DNA of 63,608 nt, filler included, from Octopus bimaculoides (Eukaryota), in assembly GCF_001194135.2 (NCBI RefSeq). It is 5 parts of 5 records of this genome, joined end to end, with 100 filler letters (N's around TTAATTAATTAA, not from the genome) between each part and the next. Parts side by side here need not be neighbours in the genome. Positions count along the whole stretch, not along the records: positions 28,660 to 55,430 come from NC_068998.1; 4 more parts are not named here. One strand, written 5' to 3'. Shown in pieces: positions 36,820-54,000 of this stretch. The notes under the pieces were generated by a model, which saw only the letters and a list, made by a program, of their open reading frames with translations, searched no databases and was not told the DNA's origin. Position 1 is the first letter of the stretch. Each line of letters begins with the position of its first letter. The translations under genes were made by a program, and so were the position numbers.

Positions 36820-38279
36820 CTAGAAAAAAAGAAGAAAAGAAAGAAAATCATTGTAGAGAAAGAATTTCATTATTAATTGAAAATTCAAGACAAGGAGCTG
36901 ACAGGATAATTAGCACACCAGGTAAAATGCTAAGCCATATTTCCATCTATCCTTACATGCCTACTCTCATCTATGGTCAAGAATGTTGGGTAACAACAGA
37001 AACAGTAGGATTGCAAATACAAGCGGTCAAAATGGGGTTCCTCAGAAGGATATCTGCAACATTTTTATTTCACAGGGTTCATCATCAAAAGGTTAAGTAA
37101 CCTTTCCAGATCAAGCCACTTCTCCAGACTGAAAGGTCACAATTCCAGCCACCATGGACATGTGATGAGAATATCTCAGGAAAGAATCCCAACTTGGTCT
37201 TCAAATTGAGACAACTGTTGGTGAATACCTGCATTATGAGTCAGATAAAATAGATTTGTGTGGCTTGACCAGATACCATGATCCAGTAGCTGCAGTAGTA
37301 TGGTTTGAACTTATGACTAAAATTGTTACTAATTCAGTAACTTAATTTCATGTCTATCGTTAAGAATGAAAACTCTCAGTCTCAGAAAGGAACAAAAAAA
37401 TACAAAACATCAACTTACACATTGCATGCATCTTCGCACAAAAAGCTCCAGTAACTACCAACGCTTGTTTTACAAGTTGCCATACAACCATCAGATAAAT
37501 CTGTTGCCTTTAGAAGAGCAACAATGTCAGTAACTGAAAGAGATTGAAAACGTCAACAATAACAAAAAGTAATAATAACAGCAGTTTCTTTGTGGTTACG
37601 TATTTGTAAACTTTAAAGACAGATGAAAATTAACAAAAAATGGAAGGTGGCAAAGAGGAAAAATTATTAACACTTTGGTCAAAAAGCTTAGAATATTTCT
37701 TCTGGTTTTATGTTCTGAGCTCAAATCATGTTGTAGTCAACTTTACCTTTCAACATTTCGAGGTTGATAAAATAAGGATCAGTTAAAACTGGGGTTGTTT
37801 TACTCAGGTTCTTCTCTTCCTCCTCCTCTCAAAATGACTGGCCTTGTGCCAAAGTAGAAAGAAGTATTGTTAAAAGATTTGCTCTTTCAATCATTTTTGG
37901 TGTGGCATGTAACATCATGTGAGATCAGAACCAAATTATTGGCACTATATTTCTAATCCTTCTTGAGCTAATGAGAGGACTTTCTTCTATGCAGTTACTC
38001 AATGTAACAGAAAAAGAAAAAAAACCAGCCAAGCAGCTATATCTAACTCAACAATCTATCTTTAAAAGATGTAAGAATACAATGGACAATGCAATCCAAA
38101 AACACAAACAAAAAAAAATATATAGGAGATTTGTCTCAAAATTAAAAAGGGCCTTTTGGAGACTATATATATAACTTGGAAAACTTACCTACGATTCTCT
38201 TATTTATGGCAACTTCATCATGAATACTGGCACACAGTACCAAAGGCACAATAACCAAGAGGAAAAGTACGATTTTCAT
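36801..38279 (-). CDS. Secreted Cys-rich prepropeptide, copy A: complement(join(36801..36819,37419..37533,38189..38279)); MKIVLFLLVIVPLVLCASIHDEVAINKR-IVVTDIVALLKATDLSDGCMATCKTSVGSYWSFLCEDACNVMQYIG
   Basis: GT-AG sites (gtaagt donors, pyrimidine-tract acceptors), phases 1 and 2 join to 225 nt, accATG context, hydrophobic signal peptide, KR site, paralog with the same exon sizes, downstream AATAAA. Confidence 0.9.
37419..37533 (-). CDS. Copy A coding exon 2 (mature peptide, CX3C-X11-CX3C)
   Basis: ctttcag acceptor, gtaagtt donor, 115 nt open in the expected phase. Confidence 0.9.
38189..38279 (-). CDS. Copy A coding exon 1 (signal peptide, pro region, KR)
   Basis: Acceptor at 38292-38293, ATG at 38279, donor gtaagt at 38183-38188. 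Confidence 0.9.
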
Positions 38280-38410
38280 GGTATTCAGTTTCTGGTAAAA
38301 TAAGAAGACATACAGAATCTATGAGACAGGATTACAAGAGGAACAAGTCAAGAAGAGTACAGCAACGTATATTTTGGAGGGATGTATTAAGACCAATTGG
38401 CCCAGAAGGC

Positions 38411-38463
<53 letters not shown>

Positions 38464-39375
38464 ATCGTCATTGTCATCACTGTCCTTGTTGTCCTCGTCA
38501 TCATCATCGTTGTCATCGTTGTTGTCATCGTCAACAACAATGAGTCCTCCTTTATCAAATTTGTTTGACAAAAATCAGTATCGGTTTTCGAAAATGTACC
38601 TAAATTTGAAAAAACCAATTGTTTAAAACAGATTTATTTAGATATATACTAAACTAGTTTCAACAATATTTTTTGTTTATCAACGGTAAAAATTTAGAAT
38701 TATGAATTAGACAAACCTCTTTAAAACAACATTGAAACTTTTAANNNNNNNNNNNNNNNNNNNNNNNNNNNNNNNNNNNNNNNNNNNNNNNNNNNNNNNN
38801 NNNNNNNNNNNNNNNNNNNNNNNNNNNNNNNNNNNNNNNNNNNNNNNNNNNNNNNNNNNNNNNNNNNNNNNNNNNNNNNNNNNNNNNNNNNNNNNNNNNN
38901 NNNNNNNNNNNNNNNNNNNNNNNNNNNNNNNNNNNNNNNNNNNNNNNNNNNNNNNNNNNNNNNNNNNNNNNNNNNNNNNNNNNNNNNNNNNNNNNNNNNN
39001 NNNNNNNNNNNNNNNNNNNNNNNNNNNNNNNNNNNNNNNNNNNNNNNNNNNNNNNNNNNNNNNNNNNNNNNNNNNNNNNNNNNNNNNNNNNNNNNNNNNN
39101 NNNNNNNNNNNNNNNNNNNNNNNNNNNNNNNNNNNNNNNNNNNNNNNNNNNNNNNNNNNNNNNNNNNNNNNNNNNNNNNNNNNNNNNNNNNNNNNNNNNN
39201 NNNNNNNNNNNNNNNNNNNNNNNNNNNNNNNNNNNNNNNNNNNNNNNNNNNNNNNNNNNNNNNNNNNNNNNNNNNNNATGAACATAAATGGGATATACCA
39301 ATGCATAAACTAAGAATATGCAAAAGAAACTAATAAATTATAGTAACTAATGAATTTATATACAATTATAAATAT

Positions 39376-50719: not shown

Positions 50720-51057
50720 ACTTGCAAGAACTCCTGTATCAAGTGATCCAGGTAGCAGCATCATACCCATGACTTCACGTACAGCATGTACTTGTAACCG
50801 GCTCAGCATCATGGTGTCATGGATTGGGATTGAGCCTAGAATCATTTGTTTCTGGATTCTGTCATGCCTGCATTTATATATGTATATATATAAATATGAC
50901 AACTACACATACATATACATATACACACATACTTATATACACAAATACATACAGTCACACCGCTCAACTATAATGATAAACTAGAACAATATTTATATTT
51001 TCAATTTCTTTATTCATCTCAAAGAATTACATCCTTTTTATAAGTGAAAAGCATTTC

Positions 51058-51076
51058 TTAACCAAAGTGTTTGATA
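51058..51076 (-). CDS. Copy B coding exon 3 (IKHFG-stop)
   Basis: AG at 51077-51078; homologous 3' UTR with AATAAA at 51009-51014. Confidence 0.82.
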
Positions 51077-54000
51077 CTNNNNNNNNNNNNNNNNNNNNNN
51101 NNNNNNNNNNNNNNNNNNNNNNNNNNNNNNNNNNNNNNNNNNNNNNNNNNNNNNNNNNNNNNNNNNNNNNNNNNNNNNNNNNNNNNNNNNNNNNNNNNNN
51201 NNNNNNNNNNNNNNNNNNNNNNNNNNNNNNNNNNNNNNNNNNNNNNNNNNNNNNNNNNNNNNNNNNNNNNNNNNNNNNNNNNNNNNNNNNNNNNNNNNNN
51301 NNNNNNNNNNNNNNNNNNNNNNNNNNNNNNNNNNNNNNNNNNNNNNNNNNNNNNNNNNNNNNNNNNNNNNNNNNNNNNNNNTATAGATATTAATAAATTA
51401 CTTAATTTCTCGAACCTCAAATCTCCAAATTAAGGTGTTCCATATACACGAGGGTTCCTTATGCACATTAAAATATGGTAAATAGTTAAGGCAGTGAGCT
51501 GGCAAGAGTATTAGCAAGCTGGACAAATGCTTATAAACGTTTCTTCCAGCTTAACGTTGTGAGTTCAAATTCTGTTGAGGTCAGCTTTGCCTTTCATCCT
51601 TTCAGAGTCAATAAATCAAATACCAGTTGAGCACTGGGGTCAATGTACTTGACTATCTCCTACCCCCACTACCAAATTTCAGGCCTTGTGAACAAATGAT
51701 TATTAATCAAAGCTTTAAGCTGTTTCATATTTTTAGAATTAATAAGTAATGAATAAATAATGAAGTTGAGATGAGGCTCATAGTTTTCATCAGGTTTGGT
51801 TTGCATGCCTACCCTCAGTCTACTCCGCGGGCAAAAATGCAACAGACTGGAGTTCCATCCAGGTGGGGAATTTATATGGAAACCAGGAAACCAGCCCTTC
51901 TGAGTCGGTATGACTGAAGAAGGTAACATTACTTTATTTACATATCCTTATCATGTGGTGGCTGTAAACAAGTGTCACCATCATACAAACAGTGTTGTCC
52001 ATTTGCAGTGTTCTGAGAAAAACATGTTTTTTGATGGAGAAATGTTACCAATCTTGGAATCAGGTGCATGCTGGTGAATACCTGCATTATGAGTCAGATA
52101 AAACAGATTTGTGTGGCTTGACCAGATACCATGATCCAGTAGCTGTAGTAGTATGGTTTGAACTTATGACTAAAATTGTTACTAATTCAGTAACTTAATT
52201 TCATGTCTATCGTTAAGAATGAAAACTCTCAGTCTCAGAAAGGAAGAAAGAAACACAAAACATCAACTTACGCATCGCATGCCATTGAGCACATATAGTC
52301 CCAGAAAGTACCAATACTTGATTTACAAGTTGCCATACAACCATCAGATAAATCTTTTGACTTTAGAAGAGCAATGATGTCCTCAACTGAAAGAGATTAA
52401 AATCATCAACAATGATAAAAAATAATAATAACAGCAGTTTCTTTGTGGTTACGTATTTGTAAACTTTAAAGACATGAAAATTAACAAAAAATGGAAGGTG
52501 GCAAAGAGGAAAAATTATTAACACTTTGGTCAAAAAGCTTAGAATATTTCTTCTGGTTTTATGTTCTGAGCTCAAATCATGTTGTGGTCAACTTTACCTT
52601 TCAACATTTCAAGGTTGATAAAATAAGGATCAGTTAAAACTGGGGTTGTTTTACTCAGTTTCTTCTCCTCCTCCTCCTCCTCTTAAAATGACTGGCCTCA
52701 TGCCAAAGTAGAAAGAAGTATTGCTAAAAGATTTGCTCTTTCAATCATTTTTGGTGTGGCATGTAACATCATGTGAGATCAGAACCAAATTATTGGCACT
52801 ATATTTCTAATCCTTCTTGAGCTAATGAGAGGACTTTCTTCTATGCAGTTACTCAATGTAACAGAAAAAGAAAAAAAATCAACCAAGCAGCCATATCTAA
52901 CTCAACAATCTATCTTTAAAAGATGTAAGAATATATTGGACAATGCAATCCAAAAAAAAAAAAAAAAAAAATGTATGAGTGTTTCGTAGCCTTGCAGATA
53001 CTTGATAGATAGAATCAAATAAATGAATAGTTAAACAAAATAATTCCATTCAATTATATTGGCTGTAATTCGTTCTAGGAGAATAATTTCACTAAACAGT
53101 AGTGAGAAGACTCAGTCACTGGAAAAATACATGTAGTGTTAAAATAAACATGAAGTTGAAACTAGGCAAGTGTGAGACCTCTTCCAAAGGAAAAGAGAAA
53201 AATATTACTTTATATGTTATTTCTTTACTACCCACAAGGGGCTACACACAGAGGGGACAAACAAGGACAGACAAACGGATTAAGTCGATTATATTGACCC
53301 CAGTTCGTAACTGGTACTTAATTAATCGACCACGAAAGGATGAAAGGCAAAGTCGACCTTGGCGGAATTTGAACTCAGAAAGTAGCGGCAGACGAAATAC
53401 CGCTAAGCATTTCGCCCGGCGTGCTAACGTTTCTGCCAGCTCGCTGCCTTATATTACCTTATATGTTCATGTTAATAATTCCTCAGATAACTGTTGATTG
53501 ATTGCGTGTGGACTAGTTCAATAACATTTAAAATGGACTAGTTTATATTGGTGAGGGAGAATGAACAACATATTTATGACAATGGTGAGATAATCCAACC
53601 TATGTTGATTATAGCATAGTGATTGTTCCTTAGGCACACACTGGCTGAATGGTTAAGAAAGTCTCTTTGCAATCATAAGGTCCCAAGTTCAAATGCACAG
53701 TGAGAATTTTGGGCAAGTATCTTTTGCTATAATCTCAGATGATGATGATATGTATATCCACTTCACAAAACTTTTGTCAGCCTGGGGCTATAATTGGAAA
53801 TACTCACCCAAAATGCTATGCAGTGGGATTGAACACAAAACCAGGTGATTAGTTTTATCACGCAGCCATCAGCAATGTCTGTGTCTGAATATGCTGAATA
53901 TATCAGGCCTGATTCTAATATCCCATGAAAGAAGTTGAGATAGCCATGGTTAGAAGGCTGGTTAGAGGAGAAAATTTTCATCAAAGAAAACCACAGTTGC

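Follow-up and report, generated by a model that had tools for sequence, protein, structure and literature searches.

Rapid divergence of the mature peptide between two young tandem paralogs of an octopod secreted-peptide gene

Introduction

The conotoxin gene superfamilies of cone snails (PMC3862624, PMC3823881) evolve in the same mode as the locus described here: a tandem pair of genes from the California two-spot octopus, Octopus bimaculoides, copies A and B, each encoding a small cysteine-rich secreted peptide. The pair lies within a 63,608-nucleotide (nt) stretch of DNA (the window, along which positions are counted unless another sequence is named), in the piece that spans positions 28660-55430. 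Here as in conotoxins, a precursor consists of a signal peptide, a propeptide and a mature peptide, in that order, and contains a basic cleavage site; the signal peptide has its own exon, the mature peptide is encoded on later ones, and the genes are tandem duplicates. A fixed Cys framework carries hypervariable inter-Cys residues in both, and the ratio of replacement to synonymous divergence (omega, dN/dS) exceeds 1, as we found for A and B.

The likeness does not extend to sequence. The octopus pair comes from a cephalopod host rather than from Conus, and conservation of its oyster relatives and of one octopus ortholog pair is what an endogenous peptide would be expected to show. Homology to conotoxins is not detectable. 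Pfam models gave no conotoxin match for A, B or their paralog A0A0L8GV66 (GV66), and the Octopus vulgaris relative P0007 scored E = 0.19 (13 bits against a cut-off of 25.1) with PF02950, a score that comes through its signal peptide. A sequence-only reading of the window had linked the pair to conotoxins and antimicrobial peptides; with no Pfam conotoxin match and anionic peptides, that link is an analogy of evolutionary mode only.

Two other sets of peptides from the literature invite comparison. The MgCRP-I cysteine-rich peptides of the mussel Mytilus galloprovincialis (PMC4558851) are a molluscan multigene family with a similar evolutionary mode, but they have six cysteines and three disulfides, in contrast to the four cysteines in twin CX3C motifs found here. 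The doppelganger-related peptides (DREPs) are candidate molluscan and annelid signalling peptides found by conotoxin similarity (PMC10501145). They are likewise small secreted peptides with dibasic sites, conserved across molluscs, and some have two disulfides and a C-terminal amide. Their precursor layouts differ, with the peptide medial or directly after the signal (PMC10501145), and the motifs of the octopod and oyster family described below are absent from the 14 supplementary files of that paper. Profile searches showed no sequence relationship to MgCRP-I either.

Twin-CX3C helical hairpins occur in plant alpha-hairpinins, in scorpion peptides of the kappa-hefutoxin (CS-alpha/alpha) type and in mitochondrial small Tim proteins. 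The octopus peptides share with these a CX3C-spacer-CX3C arrangement (spacer of 11 residues here) and predicted antiparallel helices that carry the Cys pairs, and they differ in having an extra N-terminal helix and an amidation-type tail. No significant sequence match to these hairpins was found (PDB E ~1). We rejected membership in the small Tim proteins (zf-Tim10_DDP): the only PDB match has E = 1.1, there is no Pfam match, and the octopus peptide has a secretory signal and a KR site, which predict secretion.

Results

The mature peptides of copies A and B diverge far faster than their introns and flanks

Copies A and B are tandem paralogs that lie ~15 kb apart on the minus strand. In each, three coding exons together encode a signal peptide, a short propeptide whose last residues are KR, and a 46-residue peptide with a C-x3-C-x11-C-x3-C frame and a C-terminal Gly. 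The segment for the signal and propeptide (28 codons, MKIV...AINKR; 38196-38279 in copy A and 54731-54814 in copy B) is identical between the copies, with differences at 0/84 nt. Divergence begins at the first codon past KR, and from there 32/138 nt differ, altering 22 of the 46 residues. We reproduced these hand counts of the sequence-only reading exactly, as well as its finding that just two codons carry a synonymous change alone (ATT/ATC and AGC/AGT).

The differences fall in all three exons. The first 7 mature nt, at the end of exon 1, differ at 5/7 positions (ATCGTAG at 38189-38195 in copy A, CTGACAT at 54724-54730 in copy B), and intron 1 is identical again directly after the GTAAGT donor that follows this tail. 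Exon 2, which encodes the core of the mature peptide including the C-x3-C-x11-C-x3-C frame (37419-37533 in copy A, 52272-52386 in copy B), differs at 23/115 nt. The coding part of exon 3 ends ..MQYIG and TGA in copy A (36801-36819) and ..IKHFG and TAA in copy B (51058-51076). Within this divergent region the four Cys codons and the LSDGCMATCK core are unchanged, as had been noted, and the core extends to DLSDGCMATCK. It corresponds to a 34-nt identical run, which has P = 7.5e-4 when the 32 differences are placed at random by permutation.

Non-coding DNA provides a contrasting picture. Aligned between A and B, it differs at 38/1200 positions (3.2%), leaving introns and flanks ~97% identical, and this divergence is alike at ~3% in five segments (5' flank, two parts of intron 1, intron 2 and 3' untranslated region, UTR). 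The mature region differs from non-coding DNA with Fisher p = 3e-15 and from the signal segment with p = 6e-8. The two mismatches counted by hand over ~170 nt of intron 2 (from 37220 and 52073) were confirmed at 37293 and 37251; three more lie near the donor, at 37401, 37397 and 37393.

The identity of the signal segment had been read as part of the pattern, in the manner of a conserved signal beside a hypervariable mature peptide. At a neutral divergence of 3.2%, 0/84 differences has P ~0.07, so it is no special evidence, and we rejected signal exon identity as a sign of constraint. It can be put down to the youth of the duplication.

Diversifying selection is the probable cause of the divergence

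The kinds of change in the mature region point to selection. Counting by the Nei-Gojobori method (NG86) gave 28.8 replacement changes over 109.7 sites (dN 0.324) and 3.2 synonymous changes over 28.3 sites (dS 0.121), an omega of 2.7. A pairwise maximum-likelihood codon model run on the A/B pair gave an omega of 4-5 for the mature region, with likelihood-ratio tests at p = 0.017 (equal codon frequencies) and p = 0.054 (F3x4). This moderate significance reflects the small number of synonymous sites, ~28. Measured against non-coding DNA, mature dN is 10x higher (0.32 vs 0.032; p = 1e-15), and when it is measured against a local yardstick made up of synonymous sites and intron edges a replacement excess remains (p = 0.005). 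The inference of positive selection therefore holds in that dN lies far above the neutral yardstick and omega exceeds 1, while the pairwise codon test falls short of the strength first claimed.

Consistent with changes filtered for amino-acid replacement, transitions and transversions stand at 13:19 in the mature region and at 27:11 in non-coding DNA (p = 0.015). Such a shift to transversions is expected of that filter and would not come from an exon that is merely older or more mutable. An open reading frame (ORF), four Cys and a terminal Gly survived in only 2.3% of neutral simulations at the observed density of differences; copy B is therefore not a decaying pseudogene.

The contrast between exon and flank is real and statistically solid, and the case for selection is moderately well supported. 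The best explanation, and in our view a reasonably probable one, is diversifying (positive) selection that acted, after a young duplication, on those parts of a fixed scaffold that are exposed. A and B are tandem paralogs, on this explanation young ones with ~3% neutral divergence since they duplicated, whose mature peptide gained replacements ~10x faster than neutral sites changed. The replacements fall mainly at the N-terminus, helix 3 and the C-terminal tail, and they leave intact the reading frame, all cysteines and the DLSDGC-x3-CK core. The sequences show directly the paralogy, the gene structure, the rate contrast, an omega above 1 and the retention of the scaffold; the processing steps, the disulfide pairing, expression of copy B and the selective agent are inferred.

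Several points weigh against selection as the explanation. The NG86 estimate is not significant alone (Fisher p = 0.13), and the DNA comparison consists of one pair with ~28 synonymous sites, for which the within-exon test is marginal. Neutral-type sites by exon 2 are elevated (9/80 at intron edges and a dS of 0.12, vs 0.03 in the flanks), and part of the exon-flank contrast may reflect conversion or local mutation rather than selection. The last 16 coding nt of copy B, in exon 3, are linked to exons 1-2 by scaffolding only, and the O. bimaculoides data all come from one assembly. Finally, the exact protein of copy B is absent from a 15-billion-protein collection, and no transcript or peptide evidence for it was seen; none of nine exact variants (copy B, short forms of A and of GV66) is in that collection.

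Intron edges and gene conversion

The elevated sites by exon 2 bear on the claim that divergence is confined to the mature exons, which does not strictly hold. Intron bases within 40 nt of exon 2 differ at 9/80 positions, as against 29/1120 elsewhere (~4x, p = 5e-4, in a window chosen post hoc). Six mismatches lie 13-36 nt upstream of exon 2, at 37546-37569 and so within the last 40 nt of copy A intron 1 (37534-37573, minus strand), and three lie 18-26 nt downstream (37393-37401). Past these clusters, A and B agree at every position for another 165 nt in intron 1 and 99 nt in intron 2. The density at the edges, ~11%, matches the level of mature-region dS, and its spectrum is neutral-like. This is the pattern that a gene-conversion mosaic, with homogenized flanks around an older island, or clustered mutation would leave.

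A tentative and rather unlikely alternative builds on this pattern. It supposes an older duplication (neutral divergence ~0.12-0.15) whose introns, signal exon and UTRs were homogenized by gene conversion, as the sequence-only reading had also considered, while the mature segments escaped because selection rejects converted peptides; the flank-exon contrast would then be mostly conversion, and selection would be weaker, with an omega of ~2.5. The fourfold excess at the intron edges, with 7 transitions to 2 transversions, fits this account, as does a mature dS of 0.12, which matches the local edge level and lies above flank divergence (p = 0.06). So do two long tracts without a single difference (one of 154 plus 59 nt on either side of the signal exon, the other of 165 nt within intron 1) and the 5' exon and signal of GV66, near-identical even though its mature identity is 37%. 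However, conversion tracts would have to end exactly at the KR codon and resume at the donor 7 nt on, since the exon-1 tail that differs at 5/7 positions has perfectly identical sequence on either side, and the 16 nt of exon 3 would have to be skipped as well. Non-coding divergence is otherwise even, ~3% in all five segments; omega exceeds 1 even against the local neutral level (p = 0.005); and the intron-edge excess depends on a post hoc window. With diversifying selection as the main cause, flank gene conversion or local clustering of mutations may well make a minor contribution.

Mutation, assembly error and decay

An improbable reading is that mutation produced the divergence without selection, by clustered or templated multi-nucleotide events or by error-prone repair focused on the exons. 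There are six codons with 2-3 changes apiece, 8/12 nt differ over the first four codons of the mature peptide and 5/6 over codons 64-65, and the intron edges beside exon 2 are raised as well. The copy B exon-1 tail and the next T (CTGACATT) equal nt 4-11 of copy A exon 2, which could be one templated event and could explain 5/32 differences. An omega above 1 is nevertheless out of reach for mutation alone, and mutation does not account for a share of transversions higher than in the adjoining non-coding DNA (p = 0.015), for the intact ORF, four Cys and terminal Gly (2.3% of neutral simulations) or for the untouched 34-nt core in the middle of the region (P = 7.5e-4). The exon-1 tail, moreover, has no raised intron neighbourhood.

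As an observation on its own, CTGACATT is read from 54724-54730 plus 52386 in copy B and from 37530-37523 in copy A. The match was noticed post hoc and has a rough chance probability of 0.002-0.01.

We regard it as very improbable that the pattern is an artefact, whether of base-call or assembly errors or of two haplotypes of one locus scaffolded in tandem. The assembly is short-read based and gapped, copy B exon 3 sits on a separate contig, the chromosome-level record consists of the same contigs re-scaffolded, and neither copy has an independent transcript. Yet errors would not stay within the codons after KR, keep the frame and spare the cysteines. Copy A exons 1-3 lie on a single contig, the downstream DNA (below 36551 and below 50810) is unrelated and marks different loci, a 1.68 kb insertion is private to copy B, and third and further paralogs exist.

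That copy B is a pseudogene decaying under relaxed constraint is also very unlikely: it is unannotated, without expression evidence and has a large insertion in intron 1, but relaxed constraint cannot exceed the neutral 3.2% where 23% is observed, its ORF, splice sites, four Cys, core, terminal Gly, stop position and AATAAA are intact, and comparison with relatives suggests from the alignment that derived changes arose on both lineages.

An undescribed family in octopods and oysters

Copies A and B belong to a wider molluscan family, with profile similarity across the signal, the dibasic site and the Cys core. A representative search with a profile of A, B and GV66 returned eight matches at E <= 1e-10 (seven of them new) and oyster matches at 2e-4 to 4e-4. 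An exhaustive profile search recovered the family, as did a word-indexed search that used an alignment of 13 sequences. At least nine of its members are from O. bimaculoides, and others were found in O. vulgaris, Argonauta hians, a Logan transcript and oysters of the genera Magallana/Crassostrea, Saccostrea and Ostrea. Members include LOC106874479, A0A0L8GV66, A0A0L8FGZ6, O. vulgaris CAI9726847 and C. gigas LOC117681481. Compared with hhalign, octopod-only and oyster-only profiles match with a probability of 98.7% (E = 3.7e-16).

Members share a signal peptide, a short acidic propeptide and a dibasic site (mostly KR, with KK and RR also occurring), followed by ~18 residues ending DLSxG, by C-x3-C-x11-C-x2-A-C and by a hydrophobic tail often ending in G, GK or GN. 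The CX3C-Xn-CX3C motif is present in all of them. Octopods and oysters also have a three-coding-exon layout in common, in which exon 1 ends a few codons past KR and a phase-2 intron follows the second CX3C. We observed this layout in A, B, the O. vulgaris locus L002, the Logan transcript L003 (intron retained), oyster intron-retention ORFs and Ostrea edulis genes.

The phase-2 intron with a GTAAGT or GTGAGT donor places an in-frame stop (TAA) directly past exon 2, seen at 37415-37420, at 52268-52273, at ~14790 of L002, at ~829-836 of L003 and at the exon-2 donors of the Ostrea edulis locus L005. Unspliced transcripts and older models (GV66, GV61, Logan P0006, oyster P0029) therefore end after the second CX3C. 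We rejected this stop as a significant feature, for it is an automatic outcome of the intron phase and the donor.

The family appears to be a set of secreted prepropeptides from octopods and oysters that is undescribed in the literature searched. No Pfam family matches A, B or GV66, and no PDB sequence scored below E = 0.5. Among papers sought by identifiers of the gene and its relatives, by motifs and by topic, none describes the family or mentions it functionally; the supplements of three peptide-catalogue papers contain no match, and the compilations of molluscan neuropeptides that we searched lack it too. It surfaces just once, where an RNA-seq table on acidification gives an oyster ortholog as 'uncharacterized'. 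Database labels are all uncharacterized except for one UniRef name, 'Conotoxin', given to the Magallana gigas member A0A8W8L1V4 (P0018). This member has no Pfam match, and the name is probably an automatic label that should not be propagated.

Conservation varies within the family. In the Ostrea edulis tandem pair LOC125645877 / LOC125645876 (OX387709.1; L005 10001-12919 and 16940-19651), mature dN/dS is 0.136/0.264, an omega of ~0.5; the exons are conserved and the introns saturated, at ~50% identity and essentially unalignable, the reverse of what copies A and B show. P0009 and P0016, orthologs from O. bimaculoides and O. vulgaris, are identical at 48/52 residues of the mature peptide. By contrast, GV66, the third member of the A/B subgroup, is identical to A or B at 26/28 prepro and 15/41 mature residues, and a second young O. 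bimaculoides pair, GWF1 and GVS8, at 27/27 prepro and 33/47 mature residues. Fast turnover of the mature peptide is therefore a trait of recent octopus duplicates and not of the family. The O. vulgaris P0007 locus (L002) has one copy only. At the Argonauta locus we found two distant members, oriented oppositely to each other, but no young pair.

Predicted processing and role of the peptide

The precursors have the features of amidated-peptide precursors: a signal peptide, a dibasic site and a Gly before the stop (..YIG* in A, ..HFG* in B). G, GK or GN-type endings and dibasic KR, KK or RR recur across the family. Judged from sequence, a signal peptide of ~18 residues would be removed by a cut after ..CAS, and the short acidic propeptide would be cleaved at the conserved dibasic site, KR in A and B. 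Two disulfides from the twin CX3C motifs are predicted to staple helices 2 and 3 as a hairpin, and the C-terminal Gly is probably converted to an amide.

An AlphaFold2 model (predicted local distance difference test, pLDDT, 89) has helices at 3-11, 19-27 and 29-45, with the Cys pairs on the latter two. Taken together, sequence and model place the variable positions at the N-terminus, helix 3 and the tail, with the loop and the first Cys helix fixed. Foldseek returned no match in the PDB, a search that handles very short chains poorly.

Acidic residues outnumber basic ones by 5 to 2 in copy A and by 6 to 4, with 1 His besides, in copy B. Because the peptides are anionic, a classical cationic antimicrobial role is unlikely. 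The conservation of oyster members suggests an ancestral endogenous ligand, and diversification in the octopus cluster hints at a target that co-evolves with it, for example prey, a pathogen or a conspecific. Because the oyster relatives and another octopus family member are conserved, we would guess that the selective agent is a co-evolving target, either external or conspecific, and not a fixed receptor of the animal's own.

Gene models, assembly and gaps

The piece that carries the pair (36% G+C, six N runs) is 100% identical, gaps included, to O. bimaculoides chromosome CM046618.1 (assembly GCA_001194135.2). That record holds the same contigs re-scaffolded, with the same N runs, and is therefore no independent check of base calls or gaps. 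Self-comparison and tblastn identified exactly two gene copies, and tblastn over the piece found none beyond A and B. Copy A is NCBI LOC106874479 (P0001, 112 amino acids), mapping to 40340-36801; copy B is without NCBI annotation. The duplicated segment runs from the 5' intron to ~250 nt beyond the stop and ends at 36551 in copy A and 50810 in copy B. Self-BLAST detected no homology past these points, where the DNA is unrelated; the paralogs therefore occupy separate loci and are not haplotypes or haplotigs.

All features of the two genes are on the minus strand. NCBI places the start of the copy A coding sequence further upstream, at an in-frame ATG within a 5' exon (40239-40340) that has a (TA)n run and a GTAAGA donor. 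The N-terminal extension that this creates differs from that of GV66 solely in IYIY vs IYIYIY. The exon is probably untranslated 5'UTR, because of the (TA)n run and because the extension would bury the signal peptide. Exon 1 spans 38291-38189 in copy A, with its ATG at 38279, and 54826-54724 in copy B, with its ATG at 54814. P0001 ends ..NVMQYIG, in agreement with exon 3. An AATAAA lies ~45 nt past the stop in both copies (36757-36752 and 51014-51009), and the copy A 3'UTR and downstream end of the duplicate (36551-36800) differ from the copy B counterpart (50810-51057) at 8/248 positions. Readable splice sites are all canonical in both copies, with GTAAGT donors and TTTCAG or CTAG acceptors. 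Copy B intron 1 contains the private 1.68 kb insertion (52977-54655), absent from copy A by self-BLAST and alignment.

Two assembly gaps touch the genes. One, at 38745-39277, lies within the 5' intron of copy A. The other, at 51079-51381 (no strand assigned), lies in copy B intron 2 and abuts the AG acceptor (51078-51077) of exon 3, which is therefore on a different contig from exons 1-2. The order, orientation and 94.5% 3'UTR identity of the exon 3 region agree with the copy A layout, and without exon 3 the result holds, with 28/122 nt and 18/41 residues different. Two more gaps, at 44290-44925 and 46050-46149, are intergenic amid retroelement debris.

Surrounding DNA

A (CA)22-23 microsatellite followed by a GATGAC-rich minisatellite is present in both copies (38416-38533 and 54949-55041), ~140 nt upstream of exon 1 and inside the 5' intron. 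Between the paralogs lies an interstitial telomere-like repeat, (CCTAAC)14, at 49005-49090, with an inverted repeat around it (48933-49019 vs 49199-49121). Degraded retroelement ORFs lie at 48349-48789 (+) and 49248-49556 (+), with a reverse transcriptase domain (PF00078, E = 2e-23) and an RNase H-like fragment; a 209-residue ORF at 43445-44074 (+) resembles the reverse transcriptase tail of a long interspersed nuclear element and has no Pfam match. Two elements resembling short interspersed nuclear elements, at 51473-51654 (+) and 53283-53462 (-), are 75% identical to each other, and the second sits inside the private intron 1 insertion of copy B. ARAGORN and Rfam reported nothing at these two elements, and Rfam and tRNA scans of the piece found nothing.

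Discussion

The A/B pair is a new example of a known evolutionary mode of fast-evolving secreted-peptide genes. Its introns, still 97% identical, give a neutral reference beside the selected codons and make it a clean case of peptide diversification right after duplication. Within hypervariable peptide genes, the parts played by selection and by conversion or localized mutation are still debated for conotoxins. If the intron-edge signal holds with more copies, this locus could help to separate them.

A more speculative and distinctly unlikely proposal goes beyond diversifying selection on A and B: an ancient endogenous signalling peptide of molluscs would have been recruited, in the lineage of A, B and GV66, to an external role in saliva or venom or as a conspecific signal, with an exon-centred process possibly aiding. 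If true, octopuses would possess an arsenal of hypervariable peptides, similar to that of conotoxins, with a twin-CX3C helical hairpin as its scaffold. The exon-centred process, either avoidance of conversion or templated mutation, would have left its mark on the intron edges as well.

The family as a whole carries the hallmarks of a processed, amidated and disulfide-stapled ligand, and its conserved oyster members and fast octopus members could be compared to find the target.

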